Below are positions 3,704 to 31,148 of a DNA stretch of 64,000 nucleotides, piece after piece. The notes beneath the pieces are model-generated. The model did not search any database and had not been told where the DNA came from. It worked only from the letters and a program-made list of their open reading frames with translations. The position numbers and the translations under genes are program-made. The stretch spans positions 992,001 through 1,056,000 of the forward strand of contig OX337229.1 of assembly GCA_946965045.2 (NCBI GenBank). Direction: 5' to 3'. Every line of letters begins with the position of its first letter. The first letter of the stretch is position 1. The DNA comes from Epithemia pelagica (lineage: Eukaryota > Protista > Bacillariophyta).

Positions 3704-4634
3704 GATGTATGATGACGAATGAAAATGGTCCAGGCAGATGAACCAACAATTGGTTTGATGGACGGGGTGGCGATCGGTGGAGTCAAAGCTACTGTTGGCA
3801 CAGACAGCCGGAGGTTTCGTTCTACCTAGTAGATGAATCCTAGTAGATATGTAGCTCGAATTTGGATCTTTCCCCGTTCTAACCATCCCATGTTTGCGGA
3901 AGCAGTCCTGTTATTGAAAATTTTGGGAGTATGTAGTGATAGGGTCGACACTTTCCTGGATGGGATTCAAAAATTTTCTCTCGTTCTAGTCGACTACATA
4001 AAACATGAGATGTTGTGGGTGGTGGGACTTGGACAAGTATGAAATTCAGATTTCTCCATCTCGTATTCTCTCCAACTCCCAAAGAATGTTGTTGGAGTCG
4101 AGACAGAGGGCATGGGAATCTGGGAATGGGACGACTCGCGCTCCCGCGTTCTGTCGGCGGAGTTGGAGAACTCGAAAGTCGAAAATGTGAGAAAGCGACA
4201 TGCGAATGGATCCCACAAGATACGAAGTGGTCTCTTGAATTTTCTAAGCCCCAAAATCTGGCGAGGATATCTATCCATTTCCACGTAAGAACCTACCAGC
4301 CGGCGTGTCACACAAGTCTATCTATCTGTATCTAGACCGCGCGTGACAATCTGTGTGACAGGAGAAAGTGACAAACCATACAGTATTTAGCCCCTTTTCT
4401 ACACTATTACGCAATTGCTTAAAGCTGGCGCGAAATTTCTTGCATAGCCCTTACTCCGAGCGTGCCGACATTCTCTTCTTGGTCCAGCGCATGAATGATG
4501 AGTGATGAGTGTAACCCTGTAACCTCTGCGCCACACAAGATCGACTTGAGCTTGTCTCGACCAGCCGTAGATCAAAGGAATCGCTAGTGAGAGCTTATAA
4601 AGAGGGATATCGTTGTCGAGCTTAGCGTGTGAAG

Positions 4635-6312: not shown

Positions 6313-9291
6313 TTATCTCACTACAAGAGAAGTTTTGGATTCCGTCGTTGTACCATCCGTCGGATTCTTGTCTTCAACGTAGTATTTTGGATACACACGT
6401 TTGTATAAGGGGAGGCATACGGTATCATGCTGTTTAATGGGCGCGTTGAAAAGACATTTCATTGTTCCATGTTCGCCAACACTTTGTATAATGTTCCCTC
6501 TCAGTCCATGTTTCGTGTGTAGCTCCGCCGGCTTGAACCACTTGACATCATCGGGATTGTAAAACATGTATTTCACAGTTGCATGTCGTTTGTGGACACG
6601 AACAGGGTATCCAGTCAGAACTATGCGTTTGACGACAATCCGATCTGCATCAGCGTTCATCATGGTACCAGCAACCACCAAATCCACTCGACCACCTTGT
6701 CCGTCGTCCTGTTGTTGAATCTGCCGACCGTCTCGAAATACCAATACTGGACAGGGTGTGTACGTAACTGGCCCAAAAACACTTGCGGCAAAGTAGGCAC
6801 CACCTGTAGGAAGAAACCGTTCAAACTTGTGTTTGTTACAATTCAGATTGTTTTGGCTGAATATAGGCCGCGCTTGCCACGTACGCCAGCCACATCGAAA
6901 GGTCAATGTATCTTTGCTCTTGATCGGAACGCTCTCATTCTCATCGCCATCACCGTCCTCGAGGTTTGATGCCATTTTTGCTGTTTGGCAAAGTCCCATG
7001 TGCAAAACCGAAACCTTGTTTTCGTGTTCCAATAGTGCAACTGCCGTTAGGAGTGACTTTGGAGAAACGCGAGACATTGATTCTTTTGCAATGCCACCCA
7101 GAGTTACTTTTACATAAGTCCCGGAAGGAACACACCCCTCCAGCGGATCAAAGGATTCCTCGTCGCTGTTCTCGCTCACCATATGCTCATCTTCATCTGT
7201 CGGTTCACGCGGCGATTTACCAAAAAAGTTGCCTAGTGTTGAGTCAGCAGCGCGAATGGTTTCCTTCATGTCATTCATTACAGTTCGTTGCGTTGCTTTG
7301 AAGCTGGAGATGTGATAGACTGTTGCATAGGATTCGGGGAGACTTTCTTTGGGATCCCAGATCGACTTTTTAAAACTCTTCAGAGACCGATAACGAGCAA
7401 ATCGTTCGCACGCCTTGTCATCTTCTCCTACCTGCACCTCATCCGGAAACTCTTCATGCTCCGTCTGTTCCTTCTTTCGCTGTTCTATTAAAGACTGTCT
7501 CTCTGTCTGGGAAATATCATTGGCATCCTCCAAGTCGATATCATTCATACCAACCGATGCGTCCGTTTTCTTCAAATTTAATTCCTCCGCCAACTCTCCA
7601 CGGTCTTTTGCTTCCGCTTCGTCCTCATCTTCTACGGCATCTAACCAAGCCGACTGATAGTCAGACCATCCGGCTGGCCTGGAAATTGGACCGTCTTCTT
7701 CCTCATCTTTTTCTTCCATATCTTCGTCATCAAACCCAATCAAGTTTTGTTCGCCAGTCAGAGCATCCGGAGTAGCAAACATGTTCAAGCTGTCTTGTTG
7801 CTCTGCGTCAGCTACTAATATATTGTTACTTTGATCCTCCATGGACACATCGGTAGCAATATTGCTCTTTTTGTGTTTTTGTCGTCGTTGGAGTACGATT
7901 GGAGGCTCTTGTTTGGAAATGGAAACAGGCGCAAATGTGCCCAAACAAGGAATATGGAGCAAGGAATGAACATCCATGGGAGCAATGCCACGAAGGTAAC
8001 CTTTGATAGACAGTTCCTTGGATGCTTCATTGTATTCGAAACAATCGGAAAGTAGGTATGTGCGTGGAGAATTGGCAACCCATTTGGAAGGCGAACAGGA
8101 CATGCTGCACACAGTGCGAATGAAACTGGCCGGTGAGGAGAGGGCTGAAGTTGTCAAGGCTGTACTGGTGTCTTGTACACGGTTCACAGCAGGTATATCC
8201 TCCTCCATAGTCCCTACTTGGCTTTGTGAAGACGAAAAGGACGACAAATCGACTTCAACCACCTTATCATTGCCACTGCCAAATTCAGTGGTCGCAAACC
8301 GACTCACATACTTCTTCAGGTCCAGTCGTCTCTTGACACTGGATCGTCGTACACTCTTGACACTTTGAAAGGTCATTTGATCATGATCATTCATTTCGTG
8401 CTGCTGTTGTTCCATGGTTTGCAGAGCATCGGGTTGAGTGTGTGCCAAGACGGTCAAAATAGTGGGTAACCCTTGAGCCTTGAGTGCCGTCAATATGCGG
8501 TCCCCTCGATCACTAATCAAATGATCCCATTTCGTGCTACCACTGGTTGTCGTGGTTCTGCCACCACCAGTCGTCGTGGACCTTGCATCGCCGCCCATAC
8601 CAATTTGCATATCCAAAATGGGGTCGTCATCCACAAAGTGTTTGGATCCATGTGGAAGTATTGGGCCATTGCCGTCTACAACAAATACAAGCAAATCGGC
8701 AATCCGAGCCAAATCCAAGGCAGCCAGGACAGATGCACCATCGTCATTGTCTTCTTTGGTGTCGGAAGATTCTTGGTAATGAGAGGCAAAGGCTGTCTGA
8801 CACGTCAAGAGTGTGAGCAACCCATCCTTTTTATGAACATTGTGTTTGACGGTCCAAGTGGCTTGTTCGTTTCCATCATGCGTTCGAACTTGATGATCTG
8901 AACCTTGGGCAAGAAAGTGTCGAAGTCGTTCTTCAAGATGCAATGAAGCGTCGGAAGAGACGTTAACTCCCAGAGCTATAATGCCCACCACACGTGCAGG
9001 GGGTCCCCCCGTAATGGCACCACTTGCATGAGTCGTTGTCGACGCTGCTGTTATTCCTCGTCGTTTTCGCAATATCTCGTCTCGTTTATTGCGACGAATC
9101 TGTTCTTGCCGGTGTCGACGATCTGTTTTGGATTGCTGAATTTGACGTTCGAGCAAGGAAGTGGAGCCACTCTTACCATTGGCCACCTTGCCCCCAGCCG
9201 ATCGCGCTAGACTTCGTTTCGACGATTTGGATCGTTTATTCTTTTTGTTGCTTTGTTTCAGAGCACCTGCTCGATGATGATGACCCGGCAT
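6313..9291 (-). CDS. TSR1: Pre-rRNA-processing protein TSR1 (BMS1/TSR1 family)
   Basis: 992 aa. N-terminal HRAGALKQSNKKNK; RFARYRSLKSF..SIWDPKESLP; C-terminal RIVVKRIVLTGYPVRVHKRHATVKYMFYNPDDVKWFKP...TVCLPLYKRVYPK. Confidence 0.95.
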   Translation of the reverse strand: MPGHHHRAGALKQSNKKNKRSKSSKRSLARSAGGKVANGKSGSTSLLERQIQQSKTDRRHRQEQIRRNKRDEILRKRRGITAASTTTHASGAITGGPPARVVGIIALGVNVSSDASLHLEERLRHFLAQGSDHQVRTHDGNEQATWTVKHNVHKKDGLLTLLTCQTAFASHYQESSDTKEDNDDGASVLAALDLARIADLLVFVVDGNGPILPHGSKHFVDDDPILDMQIGMGGDARSTTTGGGRTTTTSGSTKWDHLISDRGDRILTALKAQGLPTILTVLAHTQPDALQTMEQQQHEMNDHDQMTFQSVKSVRRSSVKRRLDLKKYVSRFATTEFGSGNDKVVEVDLSSFSSSQSQVGTMEEDIPAVNRVQDTSTALTTSALSSPASFIRTVCSMSCSPSKWVANSPRTYLLSDCFEYNEASKELSIKGYLRGIAPMDVHSLLHIPCLGTFAPVSISKQEPPIVLQRRQKHKKSNIATDVSMEDQSNNILVADAEQQDSLNMFATPDALTGEQNLIGFDDEDMEEKDEEEDGPISRPAGWSDYQSAWLDAVEDEDEAEAKDRGELAEELNLKKTDASVGMNDIDLEDANDISQTERQSLIEQRKKEQTEHEEFPDEVQVGEDDKACERFARYRSLKSFKKSIWDPKESLPESYATVYHISSFKATQRTVMNDMKETIRAADSTLGNFFGKSPREPTDEDEHMVSENSDEESFDPLEGCVPSGTYVKVTLGGIAKESMSRVSPKSLLTAVALLEHENKVSVLHMGLCQTAKMASNLEDGDGDENESVPIKSKDTLTFRCGWRTWQARPIFSQNNLNCNKHKFERFLPTGGAYFAASVFGPVTYTPCPVLVFRDGRQIQQQDDGQGGRVDLVVAGTMMNADADRIVVKRIVLTGYPVRVHKRHATVKYMFYNPDDVKWFKPAELHTKHGLRGNIIQSVGEHGTMKCLFNAPIKQHDTVCLPLYKRVYPKYYVEDKNPTDGTTTESKTSLVVR

Positions 9292-9699
9292 TGCTCTCCA
9301 ATCGTTCTCCCACTTTCTGTCTTTGCCTCAAGAGGGAGGATCAACTCCATCGTTTTCTTTTCTCGTTCCGAATTGGTGGATGGAGATGGAGATGGAGAGG
9401 TACGAACGTACATAGGCCAGACATTATAAGGACTCAGTCGCCCTTCTTTCCCCGTCACCAAAATCCTCCGCGACCCCAAATACCTTCTTTCAAAAGAAGA
9501 TCCAAAATAGAAAAGGTTGTGGAGGTTGAGAGCATTATTGTCAACCAGAGCTTCTCTCTTGTCGAAAGGAGACTGTCTCTGATACTCAAGTCCGTTGGTG
9601 GAGAGGTTTCCGTTTCTTCGTTGATATTTATCGATGCAAATTCCGTCTTCGTTGGTTCACTGCGCAGCGAGTACTTGCCGGGCGTTGCCAGGCCGGTCC

Positions 9700-10563
9700 A
9701 TGCTGTCTTCTCGCTTGCAAACTGCTGTACATGATGGTAAAACAACATGTCGAAGCAGTATAACCATTCTTTTCTTGACCAAACGTCATGGTTCATCCTT
9801 CTTGGCATCTTCGTCGTCGTCGTCCGTGTACCCACCCAGGTATCCACAACACGAACGACTCGCACAGTTTCCTGGTACACCTACAATTTATCCAAGGATT
9901 ACTCGTCGTTGGATGGGAAGCAAAGTTGGGGGTGGCGGACCTCCCGGTGAAATTCTCGTGGAAAATGAACAGTCGGAACTCAAGGGAGTGGATGTGATTC
10001 AACTCGAAAAAACCATTGAACGAATCCGGCTTTGGCTGGGATATGAGACCTATGATGTGAATTTGTTCTTAATTGATGATGAAGAAATGCAAGAAACCAA
10101 TTTCAACACTCGAAAAATCGATGAAGCAACCGATATCCTGTCCTATCCTCTCCATTCCGCCTCAAAGCCTGGTAAACTTATCAAGCCATCTCAAAATTTT
10201 GCTCATTTATATTCCTTGGGAGAAATGCTTATCGACGTTCCCTATGTGATGCGTCGATGCAAGGAAGATGAAGAGTACTTTGCTGAATATGGAAAATTTG
10301 AATACGAAGACGACGGAAGCTTGTTTTACGACGATCGAGGTGTCTCGGCTGCCATGTCCTATGTGTTTGATCCAGAACTTCGATTGCACATGTTACTCGT
10401 CCATGGTATGCTTCACCTGGTTGGATACGATCACATCAAAGATAAGGACTACAAACTCATGGTTCGCGAAGAAGAGAAATTGCTGAGACATTTGGGGTTG
10501 CCGACGGCAACCAACAACTCATTGTGCTCTCCGCACGGCAACCATAGCACCATTGCGCTCTAG
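9700..10563 (+). CDS. ybeY: YbeY/UPF0054 metal-dependent endoribonuclease with N-terminal organellar-targeting extension
   Basis: Signature HGMLHLVGYDH, ATDILSYP, LGEMLIDVPYV and LMVREEEKLL. Ser-rich N-terminal extension; the start codon is uncertain. Confidence 0.9.
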   Translation: MLSSRLQTAVHDGKTTCRSSITILFLTKRHGSSFLASSSSSSVYPPRYPQHERLAQFPGTPTIYPRITRRWMGSKVGGGGPPGEILVENEQSELKGVDVIQLEKTIERIRLWLGYETYDVNLFLIDDEEMQETNFNTRKIDEATDILSYPLHSASKPGKLIKPSQNFAHLYSLGEMLIDVPYVMRRCKEDEEYFAEYGKFEYEDDGSLFYDDRGVSAAMSYVFDPELRLHMLLVHGMLHLVGYDHIKDKDYKLMVREEEKLLRHLGLPTATNNSLCSPHGNHSTIAL

Positions 10564-10897
10564 GTAGTTGCACTAACTTTAAATCAAGACTCTCACGCGT
10601 CACGTGAAACGACGATGGTTGCTGTGTTGGGAAGCCTAGACGGACTGTCAGTTTGCTTTTCAGAGAAAATACTCGAGGCGATAAGCTGGCGAGTGCTCGG
10701 TGAACACAACATCCTGACATGATCGGCAAGGCATCCATGTACCATTTTGCTTCGACTATTTTGGTCTTGTCTGTTTGGGAAAAGCCAGCAACCCGCGACT
10801 TTGAAAAGAGCGAGTCATTTGGTTACGTTGCGACTGGTCAATTTGTGAGACGATCGTTGGCCGAGAGACCACCAACTACCGCGACCCAGTAAACCTG

Positions 10898-10924
10898 GAA
10901 CACCACCGATATCTGCAGCCTAGG
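10898..10924 (+). repeat. Left terminal inverted repeat
   Basis: GAACACCACCGATATCTGCAGCCTAGG; the reverse complement of 16037-16063 is GAACACCACCGATATTCGTAGCCTAGG. Confidence 0.88.
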
Positions 10925-11128
10925 TTCATTTTTCGGGTCAGCCTTGATGGGTAAGAAGGTTTCAACGCATCTCGTCACGCCGGCATAATCACTGAAATTC
11001 ACTATTGTAAATATTGTAGGATACCGTTTCGTGTACGTTATTATAAATCTTGAATCTACTTATGTATTCGAACATCCACAAGACTATTTAGGAACGAGAA
11101 AAATCTAGCGAGCGAGCCTGAGTCGTGG

Positions 11129-11181
11129 TTTTTGTATCCATCGGATACAAAAAATGTATAAGATGTATCCGATGGATACAT
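11129..11181. promoter_or_regulatory. Two subterminal palindromes TGTATCC-N3-GGATACA
   Basis: TTTTTGTATCC-ATC-GGATACAAAAA (11129-11153, 11-bp arms) and ATGTATCC-GAT-GGATACAT (11163-11181). A one-mismatch copy lies at 15825-15841. Confidence 0.6.
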
Positions 11182-11277
11182 GGGTACAAAAAGGTACAAA
11201 CGAGATACGAAAAGCACAATCATCATCTTTTGGACACATCGCTTGGAAAGCAAACAAAAACCAACAAACAATCAAAC

Positions 11278-11973
11278 ATGCCTCCAATCAAGAAGGAAGG
11301 ATGGATTGATTGGCGGAAGAGCCCAGCTAGAGCGATGATCTTGCGGGATTTGGAGCCAGGAGGAATGCTTGATGGACTGAGCAATGTAGACGCCGTGGAA
11401 GCATTCAAGATCTACCGGCAGAAGCCGGAGTTCCAAGGTGTGGTCTTTGACCAATTCAAGGCAAGGCTGGCGGATCACTTGAAGCAGGCAGTGAAGGGAC
11501 GGAATATGGCCAAGCGCGATGACTTAGCCTGTCAGCATGACCGCAAGGTATTGCCACGGAAAAACAAGACGGCAGGAGGAGGAAAACAATTCGACAATCA
11601 TCCTGCAAAAGCAATGCTGCGAGCAGACATGGACCAAGGGCTCCATATAGAGTTGGGGCCATCAGGCCTCCACCAAAGCCGCACAATCTACAAAGAGTTC
11701 CCGTACAAAACTTTCAAGCACCACATTTACCAAGAGAAGCGAAGACGCAAGTTTCTACGGCATCTAGAACTTGAACGAGAAAAGAAGGTGGAAGTAAAGA
11801 AGAAAGAGACAAAAGAAGAAAAAAAGAAAAGGAAAAAGAAAGAAAAGGAAGAAGCTCAGAAGGGTGGGGTTGCCGAAGGGATAGGGATGCCACCAACAGT
11901 CAAGGCAGCAGCCACGAAGAGATCCAAGAAGGAGGCGTCATCAACAAATGCAACAACTAAAAGGAGGAAATAA
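11278..11973 (+). CDS. Transposon ORF A: basic protein with an internally duplicated helical domain and Lys-rich tail
   Basis: ATG at 11278 in AAAC context. Two related units: WRKSPARAMILRDLEPG...EFQGVVFDQFKARL and FDNHPAKAMLRADMDQG...EFPYKTFKHHIYQE. The tail is NLS-like. Confidence 0.75.
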   Translation: MPPIKKEGWIDWRKSPARAMILRDLEPGGMLDGLSNVDAVEAFKIYRQKPEFQGVVFDQFKARLADHLKQAVKGRNMAKRDDLACQHDRKVLPRKNKTAGGGKQFDNHPAKAMLRADMDQGLHIELGPSGLHQSRTIYKEFPYKTFKHHIYQEKRRRKFLRHLELEREKKVEVKKKETKEEKKKRKKKEKEEAQKGGVAEGIGMPPTVKAAATKRSKKEASSTNATTKRRK

Positions 11974-12078
11974 GCACAAATAATTAACTCCAAGCAAAGT
12001 AATTGTCCTCGGTCAATCTGGTAGTCCTATGGTTTAATTGTTCTCTACGGAATAGAAAGTTGGGTGAATTTGTTCTCG

Positions 12079-13005
12079 TCATGGATCAAACAGGTAAGAC
12101 ACACCGTTATCCAGTTCATACTGGATGGTGACTGCAATGGCACGAAAAGCCAAGCCATGCTGCTTATCGGTATGTCGCCATGTCTGGTTCATTGTCGCGT
12201 AGACTGACATCTTGCCGTTGAATGTCTCATGACGAAGTCGAATGCGGCTTTTGAGATTGTTTGCTAGCTTCGAGTCGTGTGGGTTGGGCCAAGCAACTTT
12301 CGTCTTGAACGCATCCTTAATGTAACCACGATCGCAGACGGCCAGCTTTCCGTTGCCGAGCCGCTCCAGCACTTGCGAGCGCTCTAGCATCTCTTTGTCA
12401 CCCATACCACCGCGCACTGGTCCAAAAATGTGGACGCACTGCTGGCGCTGCGCACAGAGGGTGATCTGGTATTTGAGACCTCCGTGAGCGTGTTTCTGCG
12501 TATAATTTCGCCGATCAAACGGAAGAAATTCCGTTGCATGAGGTCTCTCCCACGTTTTTTTATCCACACCGTCTATGGAAAGCGCGAGTTTTTCTGAGTC
12601 GGGATCGTTTAAATCGTTAGGCCAATAGATTACATGTTTGGCGAGGGCGGCAATGCGCTCAATCCAAATCCAGAGGTGCTTGCCCGAACAGTATTCGGCA
12701 CACATCGAAAACCGATCCCCCAGCTGATCCGCATTCCTCGTGTAGTTGAAAAGGAAGAAGTGAGCAACAAGAAACATCTTGAAGCCACGGTTGACCTCCT
12801 TCGTGGTCATCTTCAATTCCTCATCATCCAAACGATGCACCAAATCATACCACTGGGCTGCAAGAGCAAGAGGGTGAGATCCATAGTTCTTTTTAAATTT
12901 AGTTAGTTTTTTATCGTGCGTCCACTTCCTTTTTTCCACGCCGATGTCCAAGAACATCAACCCTTGCCGAAGCACCTGGCGTGGCCCCATCAGCTGTTGC
13001 TCCAT
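12079..13005 (-). CDS. DDE transposase, PIF/Harbinger-ISL2EU-like (DDE_Tnp_4-type)
   Basis: Putative catalytic triad in LSIDGVD, AVCDRGY and RLRHETFNGKM. Also YTQKHAHGGLKYQI and HIFGPVRGG. Frame is uninterrupted; likely start MEQQLM at 13005. Confidence 0.87.
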   Translation of the reverse strand: MEQQLMGPRQVLRQGLMFLDIGVEKRKWTHDKKLTKFKKNYGSHPLALAAQWYDLVHRLDDEELKMTTKEVNRGFKMFLVAHFFLFNYTRNADQLGDRFSMCAEYCSGKHLWIWIERIAALAKHVIYWPNDLNDPDSEKLALSIDGVDKKTWERPHATEFLPFDRRNYTQKHAHGGLKYQITLCAQRQQCVHIFGPVRGGMGDKEMLERSQVLERLGNGKLAVCDRGYIKDAFKTKVAWPNPHDSKLANNLKSRIRLRHETFNGKMSVYATMNQTWRHTDKQHGLAFRAIAVTIQYELDNGVSYLFDP

Positions 13006-13047
13006 GGCGGCTAAATTTTTGTGTGTTGGTGTGCACAATGTGGAGTA

Positions 13048-13156
13048 CAAGTATAGGAGTAGAGCTCGGAGCACAAGTATAGGAGTACAAGTAGAGCTCG
13101 TCTCGTGACAAATTTCTCAAGTATAGGAGTAGAGCTCGTCTCGTGACAAATTTCTC
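13048..13156. repeat. Compound short tandem repeats upstream of the transposase
   Basis: CAAGTATAGGAGTA occurs three times (13048, 13074, 13118). GTAGAGCTCGTCTCGTGACAAATTTCTC occurs twice (13091, 13129; 38-bp period). Confidence 0.85.
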
Positions 13157-13217
13157 TACCTACTACCTAATTGCATTGTTACTCGTCTCACATGAAAGAA
13201 GTCACGAATGTGACCAG

Positions 13218-13295
13218 ATTTGAACCCACGGAATGGTTTTGGAGGGCTTTGAAACCATTTGAACCCACGGAAAAGTTTTTGAGGGCTTTGAAAAC
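13218..13295. repeat. 39-bp tandem duplication in the divergent intergenic region
   Basis: ATTTGAACCCACGGAATGGTTTTGGAGGGCTTTGAAACC followed by ATTTGAACCCACGGAAAAGTTTTTGAGGGCTTTGAAAAC. Confidence 0.85.
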
Positions 13296-13441
13296 GCCTA
13301 AGTACATCTTATTAGAACATTACCTGACGTATGTTTCTCTTTTTTTATCACACTTGATTGTTGTTTGATTCTTGTGACACGGAGTAGAACACACGAGCAC
13401 CAACTCCTCTGTGTGCAACAAAGAGGCTACAAAAACAGATC

Positions 13442-15001
13442 ATGAACGAAACAAGCTCACAATCAAAGCCACCAGCAGACGAGGAAGCATCTGCAGGCAC
13501 CAGGCCACCGCCTCTTCCTCCCTTGAGCCACTTCCTCAACGTCCTTTTGCTCAAGGACATTGAAGATTCCAACACCCCACGGCAACAGATCGACCTCACC
13601 GCCATCTGCAACGCTCGCGAAGACGCTTTTGGTGCTCGTGGTAGCACAACTCGCCGACAAGTCCAGCTCCGTTGGCAGAAGCTGAAGAACCGTGGAATCA
13701 AGAGCTACGTCCGCCTCTTGGAACAATACGGAGTCAAACCGGGCCTGGCCACCCAAGTCGAGTTAGACGCACCCACGGACCAAGACACCGCTACCACCAC
13801 CACCGAAGCCGCAAACCAATCGACGAAGACAACAACCAAAACCGACGAATCCGTCGCCCAAGCCACCAAGAAAAGGTCCCACAGTTCCAAGTCGAAGAAG
13901 AACAAGAAGATGGGGAAGTCCGGCGACGACTCTGCAACAGTCCCTTCAACTGTTGAAATGGTGGAGGAGCAGGAACAAGAAGAGAGTGACGATGAATCCT
14001 CTGTCTCGTCGTCGTCCAGTTCGGACTCCAGTAATAGCAGCAGCGACGACTCATCTGCCAAAAAGAAGAAAAAGAAATCCAGAAAGAAATCAAGGAAGCA
14101 TATCAAAAAGAAGAAAAGTAAGAAGAGTAGCCGCAGCGTCAGGTCGAGTCGCAGCAAGAAGCAAGCTGAGGAGAGCAATGGCGACAAGAAGCCTGCAGCA
14201 CGAGGCAACGCACAGTCCTCGATGAACTTTATGTCTCCTCCTCGCGTCTCCTCCCGTGCCAGTGCCAACGACAACGAGAGCACCTACACCTTTGGCGAGA
14301 CAACAAGTAATCTTGGTACTGGGAGTTTGGTCAACAATGGGGCTCTCCCATACCACCACTACTGCAACCAGCAAGGAACCATGAAGCAGCCATGGATTGT
14401 CATTGTGGATTACAACCGCCCGGAACGCAACATGGGTTTCGACATTCAGTGGATTGAAGGCATCCCCCACATGGGCTGGAAGCGAGACGGGTATCACATT
14501 CGTCGAGCGATTTGTCCGCTTGATATTGACAAATGGGAAGCAACGATTCCAGAGACTTCTGGGGGACTCGGACCTGCGTTCGATGACCGTTTGGTTCTTG
14601 TCAAGGGCCCTTCCCAAGACTACTGGTTTCGGGATACAAACCTCTACCACTTCGGGCCCAAGGAAAAGATGCGCGTTAACTGTAAAGTCACTGCTGACGC
14701 ACACCAGATGACCCAGACTGCTATCACGGCTGACAAAAAATCCGATTCCAACATACGCATGTGGGTTTATTACCTCCTCATCTTTCCCCCAGCCCCTAAC
14801 AGGAAGTTGGCCAATCAGATTTTCTCCCATGACGAAGATATTGTGCCGAAGAAAACCGTGCCTCTCAAAGTGGATAAAAACCACAAGGACAATGACATCG
14901 AGAAAGATGTGTATGGTATTGTCATGTACTGGAGGATTGCGGTTCGTGGTGGCGTCAAAATTACCGAGATTGAACAGAAAAAAGAGAGCCTTTATGATTA
15001 G
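13442..15001 (+). CDS. Transposon ORF C: N-terminal Myb/SANT/trihelix-like helical domain, Ser/Lys-rich linker and C-terminal globular domain
   Basis: 519 aa, intact. The helical block LLLKDIED..DLTAICN..FGARGSTTRRQVQLRWQKLK..YVRLLEQYGV fits the position and character of the Harbinger accessory DNA-binding protein (inference). Confidence 0.7.
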   Translation: MNETSSQSKPPADEEASAGTRPPPLPPLSHFLNVLLLKDIEDSNTPRQQIDLTAICNAREDAFGARGSTTRRQVQLRWQKLKNRGIKSYVRLLEQYGVKPGLATQVELDAPTDQDTATTTTEAANQSTKTTTKTDESVAQATKKRSHSSKSKKNKKMGKSGDDSATVPSTVEMVEEQEQEESDDESSVSSSSSSDSSNSSSDDSSAKKKKKKSRKKSRKHIKKKKSKKSSRSVRSSRSKKQAEESNGDKKPAARGNAQSSMNFMSPPRVSSRASANDNESTYTFGETTSNLGTGSLVNNGALPYHHYCNQQGTMKQPWIVIVDYNRPERNMGFDIQWIEGIPHMGWKRDGYHIRRAICPLDIDKWEATIPETSGGLGPAFDDRLVLVKGPSQDYWFRDTNLYHFGPKEKMRVNCKVTADAHQMTQTAITADKKSDSNIRMWVYYLLIFPPAPNRKLANQIFSHDEDIVPKKTVPLKVDKNHKDNDIEKDVYGIVMYWRIAVRGGVKITEIEQKKESLYD

Positions 15002-15112
15002 AGGCGTAGCAACAAAACGAAAGAAGAACGAAAAGAGAGATACATGATTAGGAGAAATAAGAACTACTAGTGAAACTGTGATTGCATGAATGCATTCTAC
15101 TTCTATGAGTTC

Positions 15113-15544
15113 TTATTTTTTCTTGAAGATGACACGGCGCCAATACTGCTTCTCCACAGGCTTGTCATTCTGGACCTGCATTGCTTCGCGCAGCTTCAAC
15201 AAAAATATCTTGCTGATCTGTTCTCCCCCTTCACCCTTGTAATCAACCGACTCAAACTCTGCCAACTTCTTAGTGAGCTTCCTCATGAGCTCAGCAACAT
15301 CAGAGTACTGGAGCATGATAGCCTCTTCGTAGGATTTTGGCTCTTTCTCGAAATCGGTCTCGAGAGCAAGATTCTCGTGACGGACATAGGTTGCTTTTTC
15401 CGACCCATCCTTCATCTTGATTACAACGTGCGTGTAGTGATCCGTGCAGGTTTTTTTCTTGTTAACCCATCCTCTCTTGCCCCTGTACTTCCCTCCAACG
15501 AAGCGGACGGCAATTCCTTTCTCCACTTTCTTGTTGTCCGACAT
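15113..15544 (-). CDS. Transposon ORF D: small basic protein with a KOW-like motif
   Basis: 143 aa from MSDNKK. AVRFVGGKYRGKRGWV resembles a KOW motif and is followed by beta strands and a helical C-terminus. Confidence 0.65.
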   Translation of the reverse strand: MSDNKKVEKGIAVRFVGGKYRGKRGWVNKKKTCTDHYTHVVIKMKDGSEKATYVRHENLALETDFEKEPKSYEEAIMLQYSDVAELMRKLTKKLAEFESVDYKGEGGEQISKIFLLKLREAMQVQNDKPVEKQYWRRVIFKKK

Positions 15545-16036
15545 GATCCCAAACGCAACAAAATGATCCCAGAAGCAACAAAAGGATACAGAACAATTCA
15601 AGCCTCATAAACCAAGCAATGAGCTAGTTATGGGATGAATGTTTCGTTTGGTTGTTGTATGTGTTGTTGTCGATGGACGGGGATCGCTCATTGGGTTGGC
15701 AATGTGTGTGTTTTCTCGCCATGGTGCTAATGGTGACATGGTTACAACTGGGGGCAAAGGGGATACAATTCGTTCAAAAGGGTACATAGTTCATCCTTCG
15801 CCGAATGTACCCCAGATTTGGTCCTGTATCCGATTGATACAAAGGGATACACATTTTTCATCAAATTTGTTAAATAAGGACCTAACGGTTGACTCACACG
15901 TGTCCATGTTGATTACTTAGACATTTTGTTTTAAATGAGATTTTTATTTATTCTTGGTGGTCGCGGTCATGTTTTCTACCGGACTGCCGGCGCGCGACCA
16001 CTTCTTTCGCCACCTAGCCCACAGACGATTTTTGTT

Positions 16037-16063
16037 CCTAGGCTACGAATATCGGTGGTGTTC
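16037..16063 (-). repeat. Right terminal inverted repeat
   Basis: CCTAGGCTACGAATATCGGTGGTGTTC, followed by CTG at 16064-16066. Confidence 0.88.
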
Positions 16064-16829
16064 CTGGGCAAGGGGGCTGAACGGGAAAGTCTTTCGATCT
16101 TTCCAGTGTCGACCCCCAAAGAGGATGAAAAGGCTCGCCCTCTCTTCTTACTCTTGAATCTGCCAGTTCGTGCTGTTTGTTAACAGGGCGTCGTGCGCGC
16201 GCGGAGAATGGACAAAAGAGCGATTTCAAGACTTGGCACATCTATTTAAGCCTTCTCCCATTTCCGGAGGCCCAATCCTCTATTCCTCAGCACTCCGCAC
16301 CATCGATATTTTGTCAGAAAAAAACGAAAAATCAGTCACAAAACAATCGTAGCACGTACAAAGCTACTCGTCCTGCGAAGGTAGAGAGCAGAAAAAAGAA
16401 AAACAATGACTGAACGGTGTCTTGGGGTTATCAAAGGAAATCTATTTGCCATGTGGTAGGGGAATACCCAATAAATATCATCGGACCTGATCCTTTCCAT
16501 CAGTCATTGTGTGACTTTTGTTCGTGATCGTTGCTCCCGAACTTGTGCGCAATAATCGAACGTTCGTCACGTCCATCAGCCCAACCGCTCTATTGGGGTG
16601 AGTGATAAATATGCCCCAGAATTGCTGAATTGACAACTCCCCCGCCCCTATAGGGTCATAAAAGTTAAAGATTGTCCCTACACATTGCACAATAAACAAC
16701 GACACCGTGGACCCTGATCCTGATCCGCTCCTCCCTCCTCTTGGAACCTCGTGTATTACTTGCGTCGAAGCCTACATCTCTCTCTCTCTCTCTGTCCTTC
16801 ATATTTGAGGCCCGACGTTAGGAATTACC

Positions 16830-18020
16830 ATGACGGCTTCACCAGTGTTAGTTTCTCAAGGGTTTTCGACCGATAGTTTGGATAAGGCAACAGCGCACAG
16901 CGGTCTGAGTTTATCGGACGATGGTGAAGAGGCCGACTACGGATTACCCAGCGATGTCGCAGAACGCCTCGTCAAACGAACTGAAATGAGAGTGCAACAA
17001 GTTCTATCACAATCACAGTTTGTACAAGACAACTGCCGGCTCTATGATATGCCAAGGTTCGAAAGAGAAGACATTGATATTGGTGAAATGATTGCATACG
17101 GTGGCTTTTCAAATGTTCACACAATCAAAGGCTTTCGATGCGAACACGAGCTGGAAAGTGATCGAGAATACATTATAAAGAATCTGAACCCAAAGCTTGC
17201 TTTCAATCCGAAAAAGCTTGTTGTGGGAGCGAAAGACTTGGTCATGGAAGCACACTTTCTTTCTTCATTAGACCACAGAAACATTATCGAACTAAAGGGA
17301 TGGTCAGCAGCAGGTATCGCTGGCTTCTCTGAAACTGGACGCGCCGATGGTTTTTTCCTTGTCTTTGATCGCCTGAAAGAGACATTATCCAAGCGTATTG
17401 CCACATGGAGAGACCGGGCCAAAGAAACCAAGAAGGGAACCATTATGAAGTCAAGAACATCTCTGAGAATGCAGCTCTTTGCTGAACGTATCCAAGTGGC
17501 GATTGATATTGCGGATGCGGTCCAGTATATGCACAGCAAAAGAATTATTTACCGTGACCTCAAGCCCGCTAATATTGGTTTTGATGGCGATGACACTGTG
17601 AAGTTGTTTGATTTTGGACTGGCTGTTGAATTGCCCGAAGGCAGCGATCCCAATTCCACGTTTAACTTGGCTGGCAACACAGGTACAAGTAGATACATGG
17701 CCGTAGAAGTCATCCGGAAACATCCCTACAACGTCAAAGCCGATGTATTTTCGTATTCCATTTTGCTCTGGGAAATCATGGCTCTGTGCAAACCATATGA
17801 TGGCTTGGTGGGTCAACAAGTCAAGGAATGCGTGAGTGTGTTTGGAGAACGACCCGCTATCCCTCGCACATGGCCAACTACACTACGGCGTATTCTCCGA
17901 AGAGGATGGTGCGAAAACCTGCTGGATCGTCCATTTATTGCGGAAGTAATGGATGTTCTCGTCAAGTTACACGAAGCAAGCACCAAGCCCAAACTTTTCA
18001 GTAGTGGCGCCAGCAAGTAA
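16830..18020 (+). CDS. Tyrosine-kinase-like (TKL) Ser/Thr protein kinase
   Basis: IAYGGFSNV, YIIKNL, IIYRDLKPANIGFD, KLFDFGLA, GTSRYMAVE and DVFSYSILLWE. Confidence 0.93.
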   Translation: MTASPVLVSQGFSTDSLDKATAHSGLSLSDDGEEADYGLPSDVAERLVKRTEMRVQQVLSQSQFVQDNCRLYDMPRFEREDIDIGEMIAYGGFSNVHTIKGFRCEHELESDREYIIKNLNPKLAFNPKKLVVGAKDLVMEAHFLSSLDHRNIIELKGWSAAGIAGFSETGRADGFFLVFDRLKETLSKRIATWRDRAKETKKGTIMKSRTSLRMQLFAERIQVAIDIADAVQYMHSKRIIYRDLKPANIGFDGDDTVKLFDFGLAVELPEGSDPNSTFNLAGNTGTSRYMAVEVIRKHPYNVKADVFSYSILLWEIMALCKPYDGLVGQQVKECVSVFGERPAIPRTWPTTLRRILRRGWCENLLDRPFIAEVMDVLVKLHEASTKPKLFSSGASK

Positions 18021-23190: not shown

Positions 23191-25403
23191 TGCTAACCGC
23201 CGATTGTAACTCGTAACCTAAGTGGTAGAAAATGGAGACAAGAGAGTTGGTAGGAGTAGTTAAACTCGTCACGGTTGCTCTAACCGGCAGTGCATCCGAA
23301 GGAGAGTGGGTGTGGGTAGTGGGTGGGCAGAAAAGTTATATGCAGAGAAAGCATATTGTGTTTTGTCGAGAGGACTTGACAAGCTGTACTGATACATCAG
23401 GTTAGAGTTTGCCTTCTAACTCCGCTCATGTATCCACAACGTCAAAAAGTGTCACACACGGTTTAGCCATTGCTTCCGCTTTGCTTATTCGTCCCACATC
23501 CCCACTCAACGTCCATACTCCACCCCTTCTTCCAAGTGTCACTATCGCCATGTTTCTCTCAGCTTCTTGAAATAGGGAATATGGTCCAAACCTTTGGACG
23601 TATTTGCTTCCCGTTTCAATCGATCGGAAAAGATGCCAATTTCTTCGTGACAGTCGTCTGCATAAAGAACGTTGTAAAAGCCTTTAGCCGAGTTGTGCAC
23701 CGCACTTATTTCGCCCCACATCCATTCACCATATCCTTGAAAATTAGCTTTTACAACTTCGCCCAACCTGAAAATTTCATGTGTCTCGTTCATGTGGACA
23801 TCGTACACTACGGGAGTTGCACCAGGCAAAGGATCGAGTTTCCCAACATCCTTTAGAAGACGCACTGCCTCGGCATGTCCAACTGATTTGACAAAGCCTT
23901 TCAGCCAAGGCCGGGCCTGGTCCGTCTCTCGGGTACCAACCTTTTCATTCATATCCTCATAGAGCGCCAAGCGATATCCAGTTCCTGGAAAAATATCACC
24001 CAAAAGTACGCGGAAAGGGTGAGTCGGTGAACATCACATGACCACAAGGCTATCGGTGCAACAAAAGATTTCAGTGTCCATAGCAATGTTTTTTTCAGCC
24101 AAGGCACGTACCTCGACTGTCCCGTTTCCGATACAACCACTGATCAATGGTCGCCATGTAGTGATGTGTCATGACAGGAGTTTGATGGACTTCCAAGTAG
24201 ATGTCGCTGGGACACATTTTTAGTGGTATGTGAGGATTGCCTGAATTGTCGGGATTGTCGGTAATATCTGCCAATCGCAGTCGACCAAGATCCACCAAGA
24301 CTTTGTTGGGCAACCAGCGACGTCGCGTACAGTTCACTCCCCATTTCGTCAGATAGGGCATTTCATTGTAGCCGTACTTGCGCCAGCGCAAAGTTTGAAA
24401 AGAATGGGCATCAAAGCCAGAAGGTACCATCCGTTGGACTTGCATGTCCGTGCTTTCGCGAGCGGAGAATGGCTGCCGAAAGACAGGGATACACGGACTA
24501 TCAAGTTCGGCAAATTGCGGGTGGGGAATGACAAGTCGGTTCAAAAGCTCGAGAGTACTGCCGGGAGTCTCCACGGATGAAAACGACCGATTGTCGAGTT
24601 TATGAAGCGCCTTGAAAGAAGGCATCAGATATTCGTCCGTGTCAATCATTAAGGTCCAACCACGGTTAGCCTTTTTGAGAGTTTTGAGGCAAGCCACGTT
24701 AAAATGGGCCTGTCGAAACCGGTGAAGCTCCAAGATCTCCCTGCCAGGTGCGCTGCCTCTCATAACGTCCTCCTTCCAGTCTAGAGGCAAGAAGTCTTCG
24801 TCCCACCATTCTTCAATTATCATTCTGTCTCGCCATCGATCCAGTACGTGCGTAGGTTGTGTCAAACTGTTGGGGTCAACGGCAACAATGACATGGGTCA
24901 AGTTGAGCGTGTGATAATGAAATGCCAGCCATTCTGCTCGTGGTAATTGTAATGATGATTTTTGGGTCAGTAGTGACCATCAAAATTATACAAAACGAGG
25001 GGGGTGAGGTAGGGCAGTCTTTCGAAAACAGGTGCGTGAAGGCAACCACTCACAACTCACACGTACCCTTCAATAAGTGATTGTCGTCCATAACACAGAG
25101 ACAAGCGGCCGCTCCCATTGTACTGGAATCTGTTGTACCCAATGTGTGAAACGACTGCACAATGTCTTCTGCTTTGTAAGTTCCCTGCGGATGAATGGCC
25201 TGTCGACTGTTGAACGGCATAACATGATTCATCGGATCCAACTCTATGAAAAAGCTGATCCACATGCATGAGACTGCAGCGCAGACCGACATTGCCCCAA
25301 AGGTAGCTGCCAAAAAGTCCCATCGCCGAATTCTAAAGATCCTTTTCATAGTACTGGTGTTGGGCATTCTATGTTTAACCGCCATGCTCACAAGGGATTC
25401 ATG
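23191..25403. repeat. Segmental direct repeat, copy A (~2.2 kb)
   Basis: Aligns by eye with 28981-31148 across the 3' flank, exons and introns. Boundaries are approximate. Confidence 0.9.
23542..25385 (-). CDS. GT-A fold glycosyltransferase (GT92/GT2-like) with N-terminal anchor and C-terminal Tudor/SH3-like domain, copy A
   Basis: Exons 25385-25067, 24933-24112 and 23984-23542 (1,584 nt, GT-AG introns, 527 aa). The spliced sequence reads AACLCVMDDNHLLK/EWLAFHYHTL..VAVDP and has a DxD motif in WTLMIDTDEY. Confidence 0.82.
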
Positions 25404-28980: not shown

Positions 28981-31148
28981 TGCTAACCGCCTAACCTACT
29001 ACTGGTAGAAAATGAAAACAAGAATAGTTCAACTCGTCACGGTTGCTCCCGAAGGAGAGTGGGCAGTCAGAAAAGCTATATGCAGAGAAAGCATATTGTG
29101 TTTTGTCGAGAGGACTTGACACGCTGTACTGATACATCAGGAGTTAGAGTTTGCCTTCTCACTCCGCTCTTGTGTCCACAACGTCAAAAGTGTCACGCAA
29201 GGTTTAGCCATTGCTTCAGCTTTGCTTATTCGTTCCACATCCCCACTCAATGTCCATCCACCCCGTCTTCCAAGTGTCATCATCGCCATGTTTCTCTCAG
29301 CTTCTTGAAATAGGGAATATGGTCCAAACCTTTGGAAGTATTTGCTTCCCGTTTCAATCGATCGGAAAAGATGCCAATTTCTTCGTGACAGTCGTCTGCA
29401 TAAAGAACGTTGTAAAAGCCTTTAGCCGAGTTGTGCACCGCACTTATTTCGCCCCACATCCAGTCACCATATCCTTGAAAATTAGCTTTTACAACTTCGC
29501 CCAACCTGAAAATTTCATGTGTCTCGTTCATGTGGACATCGTACACTACGGGAGTTGCACCAGGCAAAGGATCGAGTTTCCCAACATCCTTTAGAAGACG
29601 CACTGCCTCGGCATGTCCAACTGATTTGACAAAGCCTTTCAGCCAAGGCCGGGCCTGGTCCGTCTCTCGGGTACCAACCTTTTCATTCATATCCTCATAT
29701 AGCGCCAAGCGATATCCAGTTCCTGGAAAAATATCACCCAAAAGTACGCGGAAAGGGTGAGTCGGTGAACATCACATGACCACAAGGCTATTGGTGCAAC
29801 AAAACTTCAGTGTGCATAGCAATGTTTTTTTGTTTTTTTCAGCCAATGGACGTACCTCGACTGTCCCGTTGCCGATATAACCACTGATCGATGGTCGCCA
29901 TGTAGTGATGTGCCATGACAGGAGTTTGATGGACTTCCAAGTAGATGTCGCTGGGACACATTTTTAGCGGTATGTGAGGATTGCCTGAATTGTCGGGATT
30001 GTCGGTAATATCTGCCAATCGCAGTCGACCAAGATCCACCAAGACTTTGTTGGGCAACCAGCGACGTCGCGTACAGTTCACTCCCCATTTCGTCAGATAG
30101 GGCATTTCATTGTAGCCGTACTTGCGCCAGCGCAAAGTTTGAAAAGAATGGGCATCAAAGCCAGAAGGTACCATCCGTCGGATATGCTTGTCCGTGCTTT
30201 CGCGAGCGGAGAATTGCTGCCGAAAGACAGGGATACACGGACTATCAAGTTCGGCAAATTGCGGGTGGGGAATGACAAGTCGGTTCAAAAGCTCGAGAGT
30301 ACTGCCGGGAGTCTCCACGGATGAAAACGACCGATTGTCGAGTTTATGAAGCGCCTTGAAAGAAGGCACCAGATACTCGTCTGTGTCGATCATTAAGGTC
30401 CAACCACGGTTAGCCTTTTTGAGAGTTTTGAGGCAAGCCACGTTAAAATGGGCCTGTCGAAACCGGTGGCGCTCCAAGATCTCCCTACCAGGTGGGCTGT
30501 CTTTCATGACGCCCTCCTGCCAGTCTGAAGGCAAAAAGTCTTCGTCCCGCCATTCTTCAATTATCATTCTGTCTCGCCATCGATCCAGTACGTGCGTAGG
30601 TTGTGTCAAACTATCGGGGTCAACGGCAACAATGACATGGGTCAAGTTGAGCGTGTGATAATGAAATGCCAGCCATTCTGCTCGTGGTAATTGTAATGAT
30701 GATTTTTGGGTCAGTAGAGACCATCAAAATTATACAAGACGAGGAAGGTGAGGTAGGGCAGTCTTTCGAAAACAGGTGCGTGAAGTCAACTACTCACAAC
30801 TCACACGTACCCTTCAACAAGTGATTGTCGTCCATAACACAGAGACAGGCGGCCGCTCCCAATGTATTGGAATGTGATGTATCAGATGTCTGAGACGACT
30901 GCACGATGTCTTCTGCTGTGTAAGTTCCCTGCGGATGCATGGCCTGTCGAATGTTGAACGGCATAGCGTGATTCATCGGATCCAACTCTATGAAAAAGCT
31001 GATCCACATGCATGAGACTGCAGCGCAGACCGACATTGCCCCAAAGGTAGCTGCCAAAAAGTCCCGTCGCCGCATTCGAAAGATCCTTTTCATAGTACTG
31101 GTGTTGGGCATTCTATGTTTAACCGCCATGCTCACAAGGGATTCATGA
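28981..31148. repeat. Segmental direct repeat, copy B (~2.2 kb)
   Basis: Paralog of 23191-25403 with scattered substitutions and small indels in the flank and introns. Confidence 0.9.

Follow-up and report, generated by a model that had tools for sequence, protein, structure and literature searches.

Does a block of four genes in the genome of the diatom Epithemia pelagica form a single mobile element and, if so, of which kind and how recently has it moved? The block lies in a stretch of 64,000 nucleotides of contig OX337229.1 (hereafter the window) and comprises four uninterrupted open reading frames (ORFs), here called genes A to D, between a pair of terminal inverted repeats (TIRs). An earlier note on this DNA, made from the letters alone, had described it as an intact Harbinger-like transposon, and its 27-bp TIRs, the CTG target-site duplication (TSD) and the four intact ORFs were all confirmed where that note had placed them (Table 1). 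We conclude, with a probability of roughly 85%, that the block is an autonomous and recently transposed cut-and-paste transposon of the PHIS (PIF/Harbinger-ISL2EU-Spy) superfamily, and a member of a diatom clade with CWG as its insertion target and with four dedicated genes.

Insertion site and empty allele

The element spans 5166 bp (ca. 5.2 kb) between the outer ends of its TIRs, and the two arms match at 24 of 27 positions once the right one is reverse-complemented, with all three mismatches falling into one 4-bp block. The 64-kb window contains the first 15 nt of the TIR just two times, once in each orientation, at a chance expectation of 0.11 matches. Similarly, of the 17-bp palindrome TGTATCC-N3-GGATACA, with 0 copies expected, the 64 kb contain three, two close to the left end of the element and one close to its right end.

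With these boundaries we compared contigs of four public sequencing runs of the same organism (X1 to X4) over positions 10500-16470. Runs X1 to X3 behave as DNA, one of them evidently being a Hi-C library as judged by its GATC junctions, and each of the three holds a contig that joins position 10893 directly to 16063. The 5169 bp skipped at this joint equal the 5166-bp element plus one CTG, and the empty site AAAC-CTG-GGCAAG that had previously been reconstructed on paper is thus present as real DNA in all three runs. Sequencing depth is 59 for the element and 106 for the flank-holding contig in X2, and 69.5 for the element and 137 for the flanks in X3; in X1, the contig with the empty-site joint has a depth of 132 and the element one of 133. 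Compared to the window, the empty-site contig of X3 has single-nucleotide polymorphisms of its own and an insertion of 7 bp, as the other haplotype would be expected to have. Together, the empty-site contigs and the depth of the element at about half of that of its flanks indicate that the insertion is heterozygous and recent, and the empty allele agrees with the young age that the element had been given from its appearance. The insertion is found on one haplotype only and occurred precisely at a single CTG that was duplicated in the process.

For the window copy alone, the five letters CCTGG fit on either side of the joint. A 5-bp duplication of CCTGG was rejected because two related elements of this genome, L003 and L004 (see below), show a 3-bp CWG duplication. 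Likewise rejected as a general target was CCWGG, the core that the earlier note had read in the empty site, since it is missing from the insertion sites of both L003 (GCT-CAG-AGC) and L004 (AAT-CTG-GCG).

In the DNA runs, the termini and subterminal parts of the element (10895-11300 and 15700-15900) reach ca. 4 to 18 times the haploid depth of its interior, and the loose ends of contigs diverge after 10943/10946 and at 16040. The high depth of the ends suggests that further near-identical ends exist elsewhere in the genome, perhaps as parts of MITE-like elements.

Table 1. Coordinates of the element and its parts in the window.
Feature	Position	Strand	Basis or remark
Left TSD copy, CTG	10895..10897		Sequence; single CTG kept in empty-site contigs
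Left TIR, 27 bp, GAACACCACCGATATCTGCAGCCTAGG, begins GAACACC	10898..10924	+	Terminal GRACACC common to L001-L006 ends
Two subterminal palindromes TGTATCC-N3-GGATACA (11133-11149 and 11164-11180), 5' of gene A	11133..11180		
Gene A, 231 aa	11278..11973	+	Uninterrupted ORF
Gene B, 308-aa DDE_Tnp_4 transposase	12079..13005	-	Uninterrupted ORF
Gene C, 519 aa	13442..15001	+	Uninterrupted ORF
GT..AG intron, 233 nt, antisense to C	14055..14287	-	X4 joint 14054->14288, ends CT..AC
Gene D, 143 aa	15113..15544	-	Uninterrupted ORF
Third subterminal palindrome copy TGTATCCGATTGATACA, 5' of gene D	15825..15841		
Right TIR, 27 bp	16037..16063	-	
Right TSD copy, CTG	16064..16066		

The start codons of genes A to D were chosen to agree with the starts of their homologues.

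The transposase

Gene B encodes the DDE transposase of the element. Its product matches the Pfam family DDE_Tnp_4 (PF13359) with an E value of 3.5e-8 and 33.7 bits, compared to a curated cut-off of 24.8, and shows the motifs SIDGVD, CDRGY and RHETFNG with the predicted catalytic residues D145, D225 and E260. When 26 relatives are aligned, D145 and E260 do not vary at all, and D225 is shared by 90% or more of the sequences. The protein database holds 45 relatives, all but two of which carry PF13359, and the nearest Atlas clusters are DDE_Tnp_4 proteins of diatoms (Bacillariophyta). No second Pfam domain was found in the transposase, and profile searches of all four proteins against PDB sequences gave no significant match, the single match of C being to a low-complexity linker. 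At the level of the PHIS superfamily, the Harbinger-type assignment made before is therefore borne out by the DDE_Tnp_4 match together with the CWG duplication.

Related elements and linkage of the four genes

We compared the genomic context of gene set A to D at five paralogous loci of the same ENA assembly (L001 to L005), at one locus of Epithemia clementina (L006) and at a distant locus that was found via protein A (L007), with the gene content of relatives being read by tblastn and profile searches. At least four other elements in this genome combine all four gene families, and their transposases are 36% to 70% identical to B. L002, L003 and L004 carry the four families in the gene order of the window between GGACACC... 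ends. In L001, which adjoins a Copia-type insertion, A and B are accompanied by the N-terminal part of C, L005 has A and B, and L006 has A, B and fragments of C. The distant L007, with a transposase of 36% identity, again holds all four genes, here arranged as D(-) B(+) C(-) A(+). In each full-length element that we examined, none of the four ORFs is disrupted. For the closest pair, L004 and L005 (dS 0.6), A has a ratio of nonsynonymous to synonymous substitution rates (dN/dS) of 0.14 and B one of 0.10, and for most other paralogue pairs this measure is unusable because dS is saturated.

The ends of these elements are related as well. L003 is bounded by GGACACCCGCTAT... inverted repeats with a CAG/CAG duplication and L004 by GGACACCCGG... 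inverted repeats with a CTG/CTG duplication, and the ends of L002 read GGACACCCAGG... and are flanked by CAG at one end and by AAG at the opposite one. At the A-side end, GGTGTYC is followed by CWG in each of L001 to L006, in a search that had been preselected for CWG and that gave one match each in L001 to L005, at the expected place. In L006, the match recurs because the end is repeated in tandem, and one further match lies upstream. The termini begin with GAA in the window and in L006 and with GGA in L001 to L005. We note that the tandem array of L006 consists of an N-terminal fragment of A together with the right terminus GGTGTTC followed by CTG, in 3 copies at 9058, 11295 and 13531 and thus with a 2237-bp period.

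Beyond these genomes, 20 contigs from several samples were retrieved when metagenomes were scanned with the A profile. With the profiles of A to D, the neighbours of A were recognised as B on nine contigs, as C on five and as D on four, and across all 20 contigs recognised neighbours are limited to these three. Two of the four longest contigs (L023 and L029) carry the complete set, arranged as C A D B in one and as B C D A in the other. Genes A, C and D hence co-occur with the transposase between related TIRs, as the earlier note had anticipated, both in paralogous elements and on environmental contigs, and linked genes, an empty site and related copies with conserved ends were all found where that note would have given up its reading in their absence. 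The set of A, B, C and D has been inherited together across the deep divergence of the family in spite of rearrangement, and the keeping of the gene set under a shuffled gene order argues for dedicated genes of the element as opposed to captured cargo.

As a separate observation, L003 contains a second and different DDE_Tnp_4 gene (397 aa) that adjoins a DUF6818 gene directly beside the four-gene element (9789-12354); the pair probably represents a further Harbinger lineage that has a different partner protein.

Classification and comparison with known transposons

The groups of the PHIS superfamily differ in their TSD, which is TWA for PIF/Harbinger, ANT for Pangu, C/TNA/G for NuwaII and CWG for NuwaI (Han et al. 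2015, PMC4482050). Going by its CWG TSD, the diatom element fits the NuwaI group of this scheme. The narrower name PIF/Harbinger under which it was first described does not suit it in the strict sense, given that the TSDs seen are CTG (window and L004) and CAG (L003) and not TWA. NuwaI elements have been reported from 16 animal genomes only and carry two ORFs, for a transposase without other domains and for a Myb/SANT protein, between TIRs of 12-61 bp that usually start with GGG (PMC4482050). The diatom element shares with them the 3-bp CWG TSD, a TIR length within this range, TIRs that begin with G, a transposase without any other recognisable domain and an autonomous size of ca. 4.5 to 5 kb. 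It differs in its host, a diatom and not an animal, in its four conserved genes compared to two ORFs, in the absence of a detectable Myb/SANT domain and in TIRs that start with GRA and not with the usual GGG.

Among PIF/Harbinger transposons in the strict sense, the reconstructed zebrafish Harbinger3_DR, which needs a second element-encoded DNA-binding protein, resembles the diatom element in its DDE_Tnp_4-type transposase, its short repeated subterminal motifs and its 3-bp duplication. Harbinger3_DR integrates at AAACACCWGGTCTTT with a CWG core (PMC3016246), and this core is found at the target of the diatom element as well, whereas none of the three sites (window, L003 and L004) shows the extended Harbinger3_DR consensus. 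The group as a whole is set apart by a TWA duplication and two genes (PMC4482050), compared to CWG and four genes here.

Dedicated extra genes can be borne by PHIS and other DDE transposons, with ISL2EU carrying a YqaJ protein (PMC4482050), and fungal transposons have been found to carry a TET/JBP dioxygenase gene (PMC12730594). In those cases, however, the extra genes encode recognisable enzymes, whereas the partners of the diatom transposase are small, look non-enzymatic and belong to no Pfam family. Harbinger-like elements are mentioned only in passing in papers on diatoms (PMC2806351), and we found no description of a multi-gene form of such an element.

The partner proteins

Proteins A, C and D of the window have no match to any Pfam family, and when members of their families (58 for A, 10 for C and 80 for D) were scanned against Pfam, sporadic KOW matches in D were the only outcome. 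Protein A is the most conserved of the partners, and its family comprises more than 120 database clusters. An AlphaFold model built from 58 sequences, with a predicted local distance difference test (pLDDT) score of 95.7, shows two similar three-helix units that each end in a long helix, and the two halves of the protein show a weak mutual alignment (26% identity over 43 residues, E 0.008); both results uphold the tandem helical domain that had been read from the sequence. The lysine-rich tail is basic, of KKRKKK type and resembles a nuclear localisation signal (NLS). In comparisons with the PDB, the first half of A resembles FF domains (Z 6.0-6.4) and the second half matches the SANT-SLIDE domain of Chd1, the Myb-type domains of LUX/ARR1 and homeodomains (Z 5-5.9). 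Clear structural relatives in AlphaFold DB are limited to three unnamed or SAP-domain proteins, which from their accession ranges we take to be diatom proteins. Foldseek searches against the PDB returned nothing at E <=0.001 for the models of A or C, and ESM Atlas searches by shape (A) and by features (the C-terminal domain of C, and D) gave sub-threshold rows only. Its conservation, its NLS-like tail and the Myb- or homeodomain-like second half of its model would make A a candidate for the Myb-like partner that is equal to C or better.

In a few distant relatives, A-like tandem helical domains are also found fused to SAP domains in proteins of up to 911 aa (P0161 and P0162; K0R5J6 and K0SHM0 in AlphaFold DB), which may be host versions of gene A, either domesticated or ancestral.

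Protein C has a confident N-terminal helical domain (residues ca. 24-113) with weak matches to the Myb-type domains of PHR2 and Reb1 (Z 4.5-4.9), followed by a disordered linker (114-315) in which acidic, basic and serine residues abound. For the C-terminal domain (316-511), the top 20 PDB rows are all small heat shock protein (sHSP) or CS/p23 β-sandwich domains (Z 5.0-6.6), and AlphaFold DB gave "SHSP domain" matches with probabilities of 0.28-0.69; no Pfam HSP20 match was obtained for the 10 C-family members scanned. Low-complexity words dominated the profile search for homologues of C, which returned 6 proteins. Of the previous proposal that C is the Myb/SANT partner, the part that stands is a weak Myb- or homeodomain-like fold resemblance, which is seen in the second half of A as well as in the N-terminal domain of C (Z 4.5-5.9), and neither protein has a Myb/SANT match in Pfam.

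The D family is represented by 518 clusters at 50% identity. As read from its sequence, D seems weakly similar to KOW/SH3 barrels in its N-terminal half and helical in its C-terminal half. Its description as KOW-like in the earlier note thus holds as a weak resemblance, with KOW (PF00467) being matched by 7 of 80 family members at a best E of 0.0012 and ribosomal protein uL24 by the family profile at E 0.13, but the window protein itself has no KOW match in Pfam. A metagenome scan with a 4-sequence alignment of D found no true relatives, and ten representatives of D clusters all lie on contigs of less than 3.2 kb. Some family members (P0173, P0174 and P0259) have two or three tandem KOW-like units at their N-terminus. 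We treat the fold matches of A, C and D as leads only.

Subterminal motifs

Subterminal arrays of short motifs are known binding sites of the Harbinger partner protein in the Harbinger3_DR and PIF/Ping systems. Each lineage of the diatom family has its own such motif, clustered in both subterminal regions with at most one occurrence in the body of the element: TGTATCCGATGGATACA with 3 copies in the window, TCCACAAA / TGTGGATCCACA with ca. 24 copies in L002, CCGATACA with 18 copies in L003 and CGAAACCA with 23 copies in L004. In L003 (arrays at 4269-4546 and 8796-8968) and L004 (4228-4420 and 8653-8862), the motifs mostly have the same orientation at both ends, i.e., they are direct and not inverted. 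The change of the motif from lineage to lineage suggests co-evolution with a DNA-binding protein encoded by the element. A promoter role of the arrays is equally possible because they sit just 5' of the two inward-facing terminal genes, which are A and D in the window.

Transcript evidence

The contigs of run X4 coincide with the genes of the element (A, 11201-11976; B, 12016-13034; C and D, 13276-15731), and neither the right flank (15900-16470) nor the outermost ends of the element are covered, a pattern from which we read X4 as RNA. The ORFs of A and B each lie within one uninterrupted X4 contig and those of C and D in overlapping unspliced contigs (D: 14288-15731), so with this gap-free coverage the ORFs as read need no splicing. 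The four frames that had been called intact from the letters are not only intact but also appear to be transcribed.

X4 further contains one splice joint, which corresponds to a minus-strand intron within the span of gene C (Table 1). This intron is canonical, with the donor AGGT/GTAGGT, a polypyrimidine tract and the acceptor CAG/, and the joined 60-nt contig has a depth of 920 beside 413 for the unspliced form. The spliced antisense RNA may be read-through from gene D.

A model of transposition and its alternatives

We propose that B would cut at the GRACACC termini and integrate the element at CWG. The helical-domain proteins, i.e., A and/or the N-terminus of C, could act as the Harbinger "ORF1" partner that would bind the lineage-specific subterminal motifs, recruit B and possibly import it by means of the KKRKKK-type tail of A. 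The sHSP/CS-like β-sandwich of C and the KOW-like barrel of D might be protein- or nucleic-acid-binding accessory subunits or regulators. A more ambitious version would have this undescribed diatom clade of CWG-targeting PHIS elements use a four-protein machinery of a DDE transposase, two helical DNA-binding-type proteins and a KOW-like protein, with a chaperone-like sHSP/CS domain on one of the partners, all needed for mobility or its control and still active; we put this forward tentatively and regard it as rather doubtful in its entirety.

Several points weigh against our conclusion. The window transposase is single-copy in the protein database, so a single polymorphic insertion is what speaks for its activity. 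X4 is taken to be RNA from its coverage pattern and not from the run record, and the spliced form in this run is antisense to C. The biochemical roles of A, C and D are inferred: No Myb/SANT match in Pfam was obtained for the 58 A-family or the 10 C-family members, the C-terminal domain of C was modelled from 10 sequences at a pLDDT of only 60-85, and all fold matches lie below a Z of ca. 8 (13 for helical folds), a range in which, as the tool notes, chance arrangements are common.

The alternative that survives best, though we consider it improbable, is an element that looks intact yet is immobile, with the polymorphism being an old segregating allele and the transcripts read-through or silenced products. 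The single copy with the window transposase and the differences at 3 of 27 TIR positions would suit such a relic, and the antisense spliced RNA over C could feed silencing. It is opposed by the intactness of all four ORFs, by the exact boundary of excision or insertion and by the ca. 4- to 18-fold haploid depth of the ends in the DNA runs, which suggests further near-identical ends.

Clearly less likely still is an ordinary two-gene Harbinger transposon that carries host genes as passenger cargo, with C and/or D unrelated to transposition. This would agree with the very large D family, with the A-like domains fused to SAP domains in long, host-looking proteins and with contigs that have A and B only (L005 and L008-L010); however, these A+B-only loci are truncated by other insertions or lie on short contigs. 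Random capture does not predict four families that stay linked down to a transposase identity of 36% while their order is reshuffled, nor does cargo sit well with ORFs that are all intact in each full-length element examined or with identifiable neighbours of A on environmental contigs that are B, C or D and nothing else. A non-mobile host gene cluster between chance inverted repeats, for which one could cite the three of four proteins without a known family, deserves hardly any credence, being already refuted by the exact empty site with one TSD copy and no element and further contradicted by the DDE transposase, by the conserved termini and CWG duplications of paralogues at unrelated loci and by the 0.11 TIR matches expected by chance.

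Genomic surroundings

The autonomous PHIS transposon that we favour over these alternatives has inserted between genes, ca. 330 bp 3' of an ORF at 9634-10563 and ca. 760 bp 5' of another at 16830-18020. Judging by their sequences, the former, with an HGxLHLxGYDH motif, would encode a YbeY-like metalloprotease and the latter a protein-kinase-like protein. Elsewhere in the window, two direct repeats of ca. 1.07 kb (23318-24386 and 29058-30130), 88-98% identical across aligned blocks and 5.74 kb apart, are probably the long terminal repeats (LTRs) of an LTR retrotransposon.

Implications for PHIS transposons and diatom genomes

Harbinger is the textbook example of a two-protein eukaryotic transposon, and a clade whose four genes have stayed together despite deep divergence and a reshuffled order suggests extra steps in transposition or its regulation. 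With these elements, CWG-targeting PHIS transposons would range beyond animals into stramenopiles. In a standard annotation, such an element is split into unrelated hypotheticals, which inflates the counts of diatom "orphan genes", with more than 120 clusters for A and more than 500 for D. The window copy is intact, apparently transcribed and heterozygous and hence lends itself to a transposition assay; should it prove active, it could serve for insertional mutagenesis in diatoms. If the four-protein machinery proves true, the family might be rebuilt into a new genetic tool with several components for these organisms.

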